64,000 bases of DNA from Octopus bimaculoides (lineage: Eukaryota), in assembly GCF_001194135.2 (NCBI RefSeq), contig NC_068987.1, positions 49,719,116 to 49,783,115 of the forward strand, read 5' to 3'. A program made the translations under genes and the position numbers. The notes beneath the pieces are model-generated. The model had not been told where the DNA came from. It worked only from the letters and a program-made list of their open reading frames with translations, and ran no database searches. How positions within the stretch are numbered: the first letter of the stretch is position 1; the number at the start of each line of letters is the position of its first letter. Below, piece by piece: positions 2,705 to 10,499 of the stretch.

Positions 2705-2835
2705 ACATGTATCAGCCATTGGCGTCAGAGTAATGGTAAATATCACACTCTAAGCATTTAGACTGAGCTTTAATATTCGAGACTCACAGCACCAAGAAAT
2801 TACCTACAAACATCTCAGTGACTCTTGAGCTCGGA
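2705..2835 (-). ncRNA. Intronic box H/ACA snoRNA candidate (~131 nt) in RPL3 intron 7
   Basis: Hairpin 1: cgagctca/tgagtctcg lower stem, cactgaga/tcttggtg upper stem. H box ATATTA. Hairpin 2: tcagtc/ggctga lower stem, ttagagt/actctga upper stem. ACA lies 14 nt after the upper stem, followed by 3 nt (ACAtgt). Same strand as the host, ending 73 nt before the 3' splice site. Confidence 0.8.
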
Positions 2836-2960
2836 AAACTAAAATATCAGACTGCATATTTAAATAATTCAAACAAGGAACTTTACACAAACATTCTCAC
2901 ATACAGACATGTCAACTTTAACCAGATTTCAATTCATCACAAAAACAATATAACACTTAC

Positions 2961-4172: not shown

Positions 4173-4415
4173 CTAAAATGTAGAAAATTTCTAGTTCTAA
4201 GCAAATGTGAAACATTTAACCATACCATAGTTGACTCGTTTCAAATAACTTTCCAATGTAAAATTACTTTTGTAATTAAGCTAGTTTTAAAATTAAAATG
4301 AAATTTTTTTTTATGTAGGATTTTAGTTTAGACTTTAATATCTAGGATGAAGAATTTCAAGTACATATTAGCTTTCAGTTATCAAACTGTTAAAATTGAT
4401 ATTTTGTGAACTCAC

Positions 4416-4551
4416 CTGAGTATGGACGATAATCCTAATGGTGTTGCAATAACGGATCAGCTTTTGATAATCCTTTTCAATACTCTTCTTGCCAGCTGCA
4501 TCTTGGTACTTCTTGGCGTATTTGGTATATGCCTTCCTCTTAGAGCGAGAC
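4416..4551 (-). CDS. RPL3: RPL3 exon 4 (136 nt)
   Basis: (W)SRSKRKAYTKYAKKYQDAAGKKSIEKDYQKLIRYCNTIRIIVHTQ|gtgagt; phase consistent with exon 3. Confidence 0.97.
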
Positions 4552-4794
4552 CTTTAAAGTAGGATGGTAATAAGTAGCAAGCCTCATCACGTAAGAACAG
4601 TGAGCGGAGACTCGTTACATCAAGCAACTCAGCTCAGTCAAGCCAGCCGCAAAGTAAATGCTAAATACGTAAGGACAGTTCACACAACCTTTGTGCCAAA
4701 CAATTAAGTAACTAGCATTGACTTCAAAGACCAGATGAGAGGAACTATACCATTGCTTATCTGCAGACTTGCTATGCATTTATGCGGTATAGTC
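4552..4794 (-). other. Putative alternative (unproductive) 5' extension of RPL3 exon 4 via an upstream 3' splice site
   Basis: gctgactgtttctcttgtAG|G acceptor (AG at 4796-4795). The 243-nt extension reads TGG ACT ATA ... ACT TAA, with the stop at 4706-4704. Confidence 0.6.
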
Positions 4795-5125
4795 CTACAA
4801 GAGAAACAGTCAGCACAATTTAAGACATGCATGTCAGATAAAATAAGTAATCCTTTATGGGAGATTTAAAAAATGTAAAAAATTAAAGGGAAAATAACAA
4901 GGGGAGTTAAGTCAACGTACACATAACCAAAAAGTGAACAAATGTCTTTCTCTGGTGAAAACATTCAATCTATCGCATCACAAAAAATTCATGAAGCTTG
5001 CTCTTGAAAATGAAGCTACACGAAACATTGGTTGCTTTCTCCAGTGTCGGCCGAGCTAAAGATCATGGACCGTACCCCCATTGCGATTTTTTGTTTTCTT
5101 TTTCACAGGAACACAGTATACCGAG

Positions 5126-5810
5126 GGCGGCGATTCCGAATCTGCATTTCAAAATTTAAATCCTCCTTCCTCCCACCTAAATTTTCTTTCAAAACTTTTT
5201 GGCGAAATACGTAAAAAAAAAAATACGAAACCTGAAAAAAAGTTCTGTAAAATTTCGATTAAAAAAAAACCCAACCGTCCCCTCCGACATCTGACAAGTG
5301 AAATTAAAGTGTTTTCTCTACTGCGTCATGCAGAACATATGGTTGAGGGTCTTTTGGAATTAAGAGAGGTATGTAAAAATTAGATTTCTTGCACACAACA
5401 AAATGTCATTAAAAAAATTCTCTTTTGGTAATTCGTATTTAAAAAGTTGATCCTCGGTTTCGCTTGTCAGATTTCCGGTTGGGGCTAGTTTAGTAACTCG
5501 TATTAAAATTTTGAAAACGTGTTTGTAGCATGTCAGGTTTTCTGTTTATATACTTTTTGCGTCTGCTATTTTATAATTCTATGCATGCGTGAAACATTGG
5601 TAGAGAAAACACTTTAATTTCACTTTTTGTCGCAGGGCGAAGGGGGGTGGGGGTGGGGTGAAAAATTGAGACTTTACAATTTTTTTTTTCAGAATCATAA
5701 TCTCCCTATTTTTCTACGTATTTTGCCCCCAAATTTTTTTTTAAATGAATATTTAAGAAATGGGGGAGGGGTGGATTTAAATTTACAAATGCAGATTCGG
5801 AATCTCCGCC
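5126..5810. repeat. Foldback/inverted repeat element in RPL3 intron 3
   Basis: Arms 5126-5321 and 5600-5810. Outer 24 bp match with 1 mismatch; inner 26 bp are perfect (aagtgaaattaaagtgttttctctac / gtagagaaaacactttaatttcactt). Confidence 0.8.
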
Positions 5811-5905: not shown

Positions 5906-6074
5906 CAGTTCTTATAGAAACGACGCCTGCACTCTTCTCCAAGATGTTCAGCAAAAATAGACTTGAAAGCACGTGGACCACGTGGAGTATCGATGTAGCC
6001 AGTAATTCCAATACAGACTACAGGTGGACATTCAATAATGGTGACACCTTCCAATACTTCTTTCTTATTCACCT
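5906..6074 (-). CDS. RPL3: RPL3 exon 3 (169 nt)
   Basis: [55 protein letters not shown]; canonical AG/GT boundaries. Confidence 0.98.
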
Positions 6075-6963
6075 CTGAAATGTCAAATTATTTTAATTGA
6101 TCACCGAAACTAGATAGTGAGTTACGAATTAGTATCGATTGCTAAAATGAGTGGGTATAATATTAAAAACTGGTTTAAACACTAAAATTTCATTTTTTTT
6201 AAATACCACCCCTCACACAGCAAATCCAACTTTAGGGCTAATGCAGTTTTGCACCGGATTCCTCCGCTTTTGATGTCAGAGATAACGGAATAAGCAAACA
6301 AAAGTTTTGATTTTATTTACTTTAAAGAGATCATAACGAATTTACGAACATATGCAAATCGAAATTAAATACAAAAAACAATGAAATAATTTAATGTAAA
6401 TTTTTGAAATAATTCTATGTAAAAAATAAGGAAAAAGAAAATTCAAAGCATCAAATGATGAGTATAATAAAATACACCATTTTATGAGATTTTTTGCATA
6501 TTCGTAATTTCCGACATCTAAAACAGGGATCCGAAAAATATTTTCNNNNNNNNNNNNNNNNNNNNNNNNNNNNNNNNNNNNNNNNNNNNNNNNNNNNNNN
6601 NNNNNNNNNNNNNNNNNNNNNNNCAAGGACAGGTGCGAAACTGCATGGTAGGGTAGGGGGTTAATTTTTTTTTTCCTTGCATATTCGTAATCGACATCTA
6701 AAAGTTAATTTTGTTTTCGAAAAATTGCGTTTTTCAAGAAGTGCGAAACTGCACCTCCCCCCGTTCAGTTTTTTTGTCTGTATTTCATTTCTAACGTAAG
6801 GACAATCGTTTATATTTTCAACTAAATTTTTTTTAATTGTCAAAAGGGGAAAAAAAAAAAAAAATTTACATGCTGCGCGAAAAGAATTTAAATAAGAAAT
6901 TATGAACACTTAATGAACTTAAGTAAAAAAAAGTGAAGTTTTTACTGTAAAACCATCCGACAG

Positions 6964-8546: not shown

Positions 8547-8870
8547 TATTTTTATTTAACAATATTCCAAGTCAATTACAAGTTAAAACTGGAAATCCGA
8601 CATCTTTAGATACTGCTGTCTGTCAGCATCAGTCTGTTGCCATGGTACTCTAGTTGAAGATTGCAGTTCCCCTATTTCATTCATCTTAAAAGAAATTCTA
8701 ATAGAAAATCAAGTACTTTGATAACTTCTTCAAAATATAGACTCTTATATTTTTTTCTAACTAAAATGGATAAATATTTCTTTTGTGTAGTATTGTAAGT
8801 GCATCTGCCTAGCAAAAGAAAGTAACAGGGATGTATTCCAGTGTACATTTTGAAATATTATTTGAATACC
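8547..8870 (+). repeat. ~320-bp direct repeat of 12199-12525
   Basis: Near-identical sequence starting tttttatttaacaatattccaagtcaattaca; the two copies flank NDUFB10 exon 2. Confidence 0.85.
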
Positions 8871-10499
8871 TAAAAATTTGTTGACCAAAATTTTACTATT
8901 ACTTGAGGTATGGTTTCTGAGAATGTGTTAGTTGTGTAGCAGCAACTGAGTGGTGATTATTTTTCTCTTTGCAACCATACATTATTGTAAAATTGTATGG
9001 TTTTTAAATTGTTTCCATTGTCTGTGATTAGCAGTTTAGCGTGTGGTAAACCTGATTGTGATGCCATAGTCTGTATCCATTCACCTGCGTTGTGCTGTTC
9101 TGTGGCCTAACTCTTACTAGTTCTGTGCAGCTCAGTGCTGTAAGAAGCAGGTGTAGTATGTAATTAAAGGTGTTTTGTTTGCCTGCAGTGCTACATTCAT
9201 GTTCTTCATTATGCTTGTATAGACAACAGTAAGCAACCTGAAATCATTGTGATCACATGGAAATAAATCTCAACTTCTGTATAAAACTTTAAGATGGAAG
9301 AAGATATTTTAGTACCAGTTGCAAGTTATTAATGCTTATCAACTTGAAACCATACTGCTTCTTGGTCAGTAGAAGAAAAGATCTATAATTCTTCAGACTT
9401 TAACCACCCTTATCATGATATCACAAAGCACACACACCTATATATATAGAAAGTCATACTAGATCAGTCATCTCTCTTTTAAATATACTCAAACTTCACC
9501 ATTCTGTGCTGCCATCCAACACTTTCTTTTCTGAAAGACCTCTATTTCCAACCTTCACCTACTCTTGCATTTATCTCATCATCCAACTCTGCTGTTACCA
9601 ATCATTCCATTCTCCATGACTTCACTCAAATAGCCTCTTTTTTCCCCATCATACTCTTGCTCTTTTCACCCACTCACCCTTACCTTTACCACTTCAGCCA
9701 TTACCACTTACTTTCCTACCAACAATACCCCTAAATATATCTGCCTTCTCATCATACTCTTGACCCATTCACCTTCCCACCTATTCTCATCCCTCAGATG
9801 TCATGGTTTTCTCTCCTCCTCTTCAAATATCCATTTCTGGCATCATTCTTCCCTTTACTGTTCACACTATAAGGTGGTTGGGTAAATCAGCAGAGAAAGT
9901 ATATGGTTATGAGGTCCCTCTAGTCCTGTCTCACAGATGACTGTTCAGCCTCTCAAGTGTTGGTGCCATAAGAAAATGCACCCAGTATACTATGTAAAGT
10001 GGTTGACATTTGGAAAAACATCTAGCCATACTAGCCATAAATACCAAGCCAGATGACATGTATGTACACCAAGACACCTTGACTTCGAAAGCAGTCGCTC
10101 CTAGTGGGAAGTAACTTGAACTGCAATGACCCAACCAACCTGTGCTAGCATAGAAAATGGACATAAAAAAATAATGATGATATTGTATTACTTAAATGAA
10201 CACAATAGTAATGGATTAGTTAAAAATTGTTGGGAGTGTATGACCATCAATAAATGTTCTGAATATCTCCTTGCTGAACATATTTCCATCTGTATCTCTC
10301 TTAATACCATCACCATTCATGCCACCACTATGGGAGAACTTTTATGCAGTCACTGGACTTGCTTGAAACAGAAGCTGTCCCTCACATTCCACTCTATCAT
10401 TTTTAAAACAAACAAATGACACACACAGTTTACTTGGATATAAAAGCAGGATGGTTCATTGGTGGAAGATCTGTGATGATATTTTTTTTTACTCAATGA

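Follow-up and report, generated by a model that had tools for sequence, protein, structure and literature searches.

The analysed window was a 64,000-nt stretch of the Octopus bimaculoides genome, and it holds RPL3 (uL3) on the minus strand. The spliced product of eight exons (7363-7361, 7247-7055, 6074-5906, 4551-4416, 4172-3986, 3852-3494, 3080-2961 and 2631-2590) was 100% identical to O. bimaculoides uL3. Intron 3 spans 5905-4552 (1354 nt) and lies at the same position and phase (AAC TG|G, after ...FYKN) in every species fetched, being orthologous to human RPL3 intron 3 and C. elegans rpl-3 intron 1. The features at its 3' end, all on the minus strand, are as follows.
5906-6074: RPL3 exon 3, ending in ...FYKN and a W codon split TG|G; the 5' splice site GT is at 5905-5904.
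4809-4837: branch-point-like CTGAC motifs (4813-4809 and 4837-4833) upstream of the candidate alternative acceptor; a YTGAC at the near position is kept in O. sinensis and Sepia.
4795-4808: candidate alternative 3' splice site, with pyrimidine tract TGTTTCTCTTGT (4808-4797) and AG (4796-4795); the alternative exon would start at 4794.
4740-4796: predicted cephalopod-specific hairpin, with 5' arm AGGACTATACC (4796-4786) and 3' arm GGTATAGTTCCT (4751-4740), 11 bp with one bulged U; the 34-nt loop contains a small inner stem, and the AG lies at the base.
4733-4747: 5' half of a split motif copy (copy 1), with P1 5' strand UAGUUC 4747-4742, bulge side CUCU 4741-4738 and P2 5' strand 4737-4733.
4704-4706: TAA that would be in frame if the alternative acceptor were used (codon 152 of 402).
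4630-4643: 3' half of split copy 1, with P2 3' strand 4643-4639, ACU 4638-4636 and P1 3' strand GAGCUG 4635-4630.
4578-4614: intact motif copy 2, with P1 CGAGUCUC (4614-4607) and GAGGCUUG (4585-4578), CGCU 4606-4603, P2 CAC (4602-4600) with GUG (4590-4588), and AU 4587-4586.
4552-4577: productive branch-point and pyrimidine region (probable branch point CTTAT 4574-4570) and weak acceptor TTTAAAG (AG 4553-4552), starting immediately after motif copy 2.
4416-4551: RPL3 exon 4.

A preliminary description of this region, made from the sequence alone, had proposed a strong upstream acceptor with two CTGAC motifs, a weaker productive acceptor (...ctactttaaAG), a 243-nt extension (4794-4552) with an in-frame TAA about 290 nt before the next exon junction, and an 11-bp stem holding the AG. 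These observations were confirmed, with the TAA 288 nt upstream of the exon 4/5 junction. The one exception was the second CTGAC, which had been placed at 4847-4843. That stretch reads CTTAT, and the motif lies 10 nt away, at 4837-4833.

The hairpin was predicted to fold at -18 kcal/mol (z = -2.35, 3 of 200 shuffles folding as well), which is marginal on its own. In the predicted ensemble, G4795 was paired with a probability of 1.00 and A4796 with 0.64. Of the 65 AGs in the intron, the one at 4796-4795 ranked first on a crude composite of pyrimidine run, branch-like motif, Y at -3 and no nearby upstream AG. However, two AGs (5246 and 5233) scored similarly. They lie inside a long foldback (palindromic) element at 5126-5810, which has 50-nt and 26-nt near-perfect inverted arms, is partly shared with O. 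sinensis and is probably a MITE-like insertion. The productive acceptor is the only one in the gene with A at -3, and its longest pyrimidine run (4) ties for the shortest in the gene. An A at -3 was found in 8 of the 12 species read by eye, a count that leaves out Asterias.

The real evidence against chance is conservation, which the preliminary description had named as a test. The RPL3 loci of Argonauta hians, O. sinensis and Sepia pharaonis were compared with the window. Octopus and Argonauta aligned only at the exons and at two intronic islands. One is 4827-4552, the region in question. The other is 2834-2708 in intron 7, within an H/ACA snoRNA-like element (2706-2836, minus strand; 81% over 130 nt) that hits Rfam ceN100 at 37.7 bits (E 2.7e-5), below the gathering score. 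The block from 60 to 31 nt upstream of the AG matched at 7/30 positions in both Argonauta and Sepia, whereas the 30 nt holding the branch-like motif and pyrimidine tract matched at 19/30 and 17/30, respectively. Constraint is strong and starts about 30 nt upstream of the proposed acceptor. The hairpin arms matched at 23/23, 23/23 and 22/23 positions in O. sinensis, Argonauta and Sepia, compared with 30, 27 and 22 of 34 in the loop, and TAG|GACTATACC was identical in all three. The acceptor-plus-hairpin module is therefore under selection. The arms showed no compensatory change, and thus no covariation for or against the stem; the single difference, in Sepia, breaks the basal pair. The hairpin is absent outside cephalopods.

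In Sepia, intron 3 is 29 kb long (7654-37014 of the fetched Sepia locus), against 0.5-2.4 kb in octopods. The conserved TAG|GACTATACC...GGTATAGTTCC module lies at 9770-9832 of that locus, 2 kb into the intron and 27 kb upstream of exon 4, with no assembly gap. Use of its AG would give a stop after 7 codons. A simple extension of exon 4 cannot be the general cephalopod outcome.

The last ~100 nt before exon 4 are also conserved in Sepia, and they contain a structured motif that the preliminary description had missed. Its pattern is 5'-[P1 ..YUC]-CKC-U-[P2 hairpin, free sequence and length]-A-U-[GAR.. P1]-3'. It was found in the orthologous intron of the two Octopus species, Argonauta, Sepia, Haliotis, Saccostrea, Liolophura, Lingula, Capitella, Drosophila sechellia, Acipenser and the pika Ochotona, in one to three tandem copies. 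The last copy ends 20-31 nt from the productive AG in the non-fly protostomes, 41-71 nt in the vertebrates and 136 nt in Drosophila. A starfish locus (Asterias), fetched afterwards and not used for training, gave four tandem hits (E from 3e-6 to 9e-4), all in the orthologous intron just upstream of exon 4. The motif was thus present in all 13 bilaterians examined, with 1-4 copies each.

Covariation of the motif is strong. On 21 instances, 77.8% of cells were paired, compared with 59% in shuffles (0 of 500 reached the observed value) and 35-43% in slid controls. Double changes occurred at 14 of 15 pairs; pair 7-53, for example, is GC 9, UA 4, UG 4 and CG 3. RNAalifold recovered both helices unaided and added an invariant U-A pair, leaving a CKC bulge opposite a single U. 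Because some instances had been picked with a pairing descriptor, the test was repeated with sequence-only anchors (YYC-CKCU ... AU-GRR). Of the anchor pairs in the orthologous introns, 17 of 34 were fully paired, versus 1 of 647 in 1.68 Mb of other sequence. In 214 kb searched with a covariance model of the motif (R1), every hit below E = 1 lay in the orthologous introns; the two weak hits above E = 1 were a third Saccostrea copy and one noise hit elsewhere in the window. A metagenome scan for the cephalopod sequence version of the motif found nothing.

In the octopus window, the intact copy (4614-4578) scored 38 bits (E 7e-7). It ends 25 nt before the productive AG, where the branch point and U2 anchoring site must lie, so that the probable branch point abuts it. 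The second copy is split into UAGUUC-CUCU-CAUCU (4747-4733) and GCUUG-ACU-GAGCUG (4643-4630). In Sepia the two halves, UAGUUC-CGCU-CAACUA and UGGUUG-AU-GAGCUG, are perfectly complementary with canonical loops although 27 kb apart, and no local partner was found for the Sepia 3' half. O. sinensis keeps a 5-bp P2, with one compensatory difference from Sepia. In O. bimaculoides, P2 of this copy is only 2 bp, and its 3' bulge side reads ACU rather than AU. Bases 4747-4740 belong both to the split copy and to the 3' arm of the hairpin, so the two folds are mutually exclusive. Forcing the split copy costs about +4.5 kcal/mol in prediction.

Feedback on RPL3 by unproductive splicing has been known since 2000-2005. 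In mammals (Cuccurese 2005; Russo 2010; Russo 2011, PMC3177206; Murphy 2026, PMC12811116), an upstream cryptic 3' splice site in the same intron extends exon 4 and brings in a PTC, and the productive acceptor is weak. Murphy et al. call the isoform deeply conserved, and show that RPL3L drives it and crosslinks to intron 3; RPL3L represses RPL3 through it in heart muscle, which gives the system medical weight. The human extension is about 180 nt. In pika, an acceptor-like CAG|CUCCGCUC inside P1 of the first motif copy lies 176 nt upstream of exon 4 and gives in-frame stops, and the tandem motif copies fall within the stretch that corresponds to the human extension. In-frame stops also follow the candidate acceptor in Argonauta (read by eye from the alignment). 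Octopus has one intact and one split copy instead of three, and its candidate AG lies 44 nt upstream of the P1 of the motif, inside a separate hairpin, rather than inside P1. The G-runs and hnRNP H1 sites described for human are not evident in octopus.

The worm rpl-3 gene is also spliced unproductively at the orthologous intron, and its alternative region is unusually conserved among related species (Mitrovich & Anderson 2000, as cited in PMC4937301). Takei et al. 2016 (PMC4937301) note that the worm, human and fly introns are orthologous, and state that no stretch conserved across phyla was found. Here, a structure-level motif is shared across phyla. The L10a element L10ARE (PMC4937301) and the intron structures of yeast RPL30, RPS14B, RPL22 and RPL7B are comparable, in that a ribosomal protein gene carries a conserved intronic RNA element between or near competing splice signals, which the protein uses for negative feedback. 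L10ARE is a ~40-nt sequence block between alternative 5' splice sites, whereas the present element is a short helix-bulge-helix in tandem copies next to the 3' splice site, for which a role of uL3 is only inferred.

The explanation we favour, with moderate confidence, is that 4850-4552 is the cephalopod form of the regulated 3' end of the RPL3 feedback intron. The layout of the two acceptors, the early stop, the conservation, and the motif with its position rest directly on sequence and comparison. Use of the upstream AG, decay of its product by NMD, binding by uL3 and the feedback itself are inferred. In this view, a good upstream acceptor competes with a deliberately weak productive one, and its use would add 243 nt with an early stop, giving a 152-aa alternative product and an NMD-type transcript. 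Surplus uL3, or a uL3-containing complex, would bind or stabilise the motif, occlude the branch-point region of the productive site and shift splicing to the upstream site, lowering RPL3 mRNA. In cephalopods, formation of the split copy would additionally melt the base of the hairpin and expose the AG. The preliminary description had inferred that the intron carries the same logic as in human and worm, with RNA structure gating the site, and this interpretation is partly supported: homology to human RPL3 AS-NMD is well supported by comparative evidence, while hairpin gating is plausible but unproven.

Several results weigh against parts of this model. In vertebrates, Capitella and Saccostrea the candidate upstream AG lies inside P1, where motif formation would hide it rather than expose it, so the gating logic cannot be universal. 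The Sepia geometry suggests a cassette-type or long-range variant. Model R1 and a long-range descriptor, searched against 120 eukaryotic rDNA fragments, gave no conserved counterpart in LSU rRNA, so uL3 binding has no support from mimicry, although a three-dimensional or discontinuous mimic is not excluded. The human CLIP-qPCR signal was reported upstream of the alternative site, not within the extension (PMC12811116). A search of a protein collection for the alternative-isoform peptide found no candidate, but the index seems unreliable for a 41-aa query and the collection shows no octopus transcriptome source.

An unlikely alternative is that the structure is a constitutive splicing aid, needed to use the weak AAAG acceptor, for example by presenting the branch point, while the upstream AG is an unused decoy kept buried by the hairpin. 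The conserved weakness of the productive acceptor, the predicted pairing of the AG and the structural splicing enhancers of yeast RP introns (PMC12311795) fit this view. However, the orthologous intron is experimentally an AS-NMD switch in human and worm (PMC3177206, PMC4937301), and an acceptor-like AG with a pyrimidine tract sits just upstream of, or inside, the first motif copy in 11 of the 12 species read (not located in Drosophila; Asterias not included). It is also unlikely that the cephalopod hairpin module marks a poison cassette exon or another long-range element, rather than a simple 5' extension of exon 4. The distance of the module from exon 4 in Sepia suggests it, but no conserved donor site follows the module in octopods or Sepia, and in octopods it is contiguous with the rest of the conserved region. 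A chance acceptor and hairpin in neutral intron sequence, to which the modest z-score and the similarly scoring AGs of the foldback element might point, is refuted by the conservation across four cephalopods and of the motif across Bilateria.

A C/D-type snoRNA or snoRNA relic is very unlikely. Rfam RF01151 (snoU82P) hits the last 53 nt of pika RPL3 intron 3 (73.7 bits), and a box-C-like GUGAUGA lies at 4590-4584 in octopus. Rfam searches of the window, and of 4400-5000 at a loose threshold (E <= 10), gave only noise, with no snoU82P hit, and no CUGA box D or terminal stem lies downstream. The "box C" bases covary as Watson-Crick pairs and the partner strand lacks GA, which also rules out K-turn, SECIS and hammerhead readings of UGAUGAG. 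The tandem copies, the last ending 20-31 nt from the AG in the non-fly protostomes, likewise argue against a snoRNA. The snoU82P model has no structure, is restricted to mammals, does not hit Acipenser at the gathering score, and spans from the 3' strand of the last motif copy to the splice site without capturing the helices or the upstream copies. Complementarity between 4687-4672 and the exon-4 donor at 4417-4402 (16 nt, 81%) was dismissed as probably chance, because the stretch is deleted in Argonauta; it is also altered in O. sinensis.

A more far-reaching possibility, which remains tentative, is that the motif (..YUC CKC UC..GA U GAR..) is the direct uL3/uL3L recognition element of the feedback loop, kept since the bilaterian ancestor in 1-4 tandem copies between the unproductive and productive 3' splice sites. 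In cephalopods, one copy would have been split and wired to a mutually exclusive hairpin hiding the unproductive acceptor, making a protein-operated RNA switch that works over ~100 nt in octopods and ~27 kb in cuttlefish. No cis-element has been defined for RPL3 feedback, and a bilaterian-wide structured motif in this intron appears not to have been described as such. The motif, shared by molluscs, worms, flies, starfish, fish and mammals, may be this long-sought control element. It offers a concrete RNA target that can be mutated, probed and used in binding assays with uL3 and uL3L, and it would relabel the mammalian snoU82P as part of a splicing control element. The octopus and cuttlefish arrangement adds a natural experiment on whether competing RNA folds choose the splice site.

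Rfam snoRNAs were detected in RPL3 introns of other animals: SNORD31 in the orthologous intron of Lingula (1471-1540 of the fetched locus, L007), U83D in that of Drosophila (1218-1298, L010), and SNORD43 plus two U83B in pika (6789-6852, 8658-8750 and 9362-9454, L011). None of these families was detected in the octopus gene. The annotated second RPL3 isoform of O. sinensis (X2, 355 aa) diverges within the exon 6 region (after ...KKIYRVGR), not at intron 3, and the annotated gene span is 22 kb because of it. In intron 2 of the octopus gene, an assembly gap (run of N, 6545-6622) is flanked by repeated "tagatgtcg..attacgaatatgcaa" pieces that resemble each other, suggesting a collapsed repeat. 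A probable NDUFB10 start codon lies head-to-head (~7812 onward, plus strand), about 420 bp from the RPL3 start region, and the divergent RPL3-NDUFB10 pair was also seen in O. sinensis, Argonauta, Sepia, Haliotis and Saccostrea. Farther along the window, 24001-28000 and 34001-36000 are very AT-rich (GC about 0.19), compared with 0.30-0.43 elsewhere.
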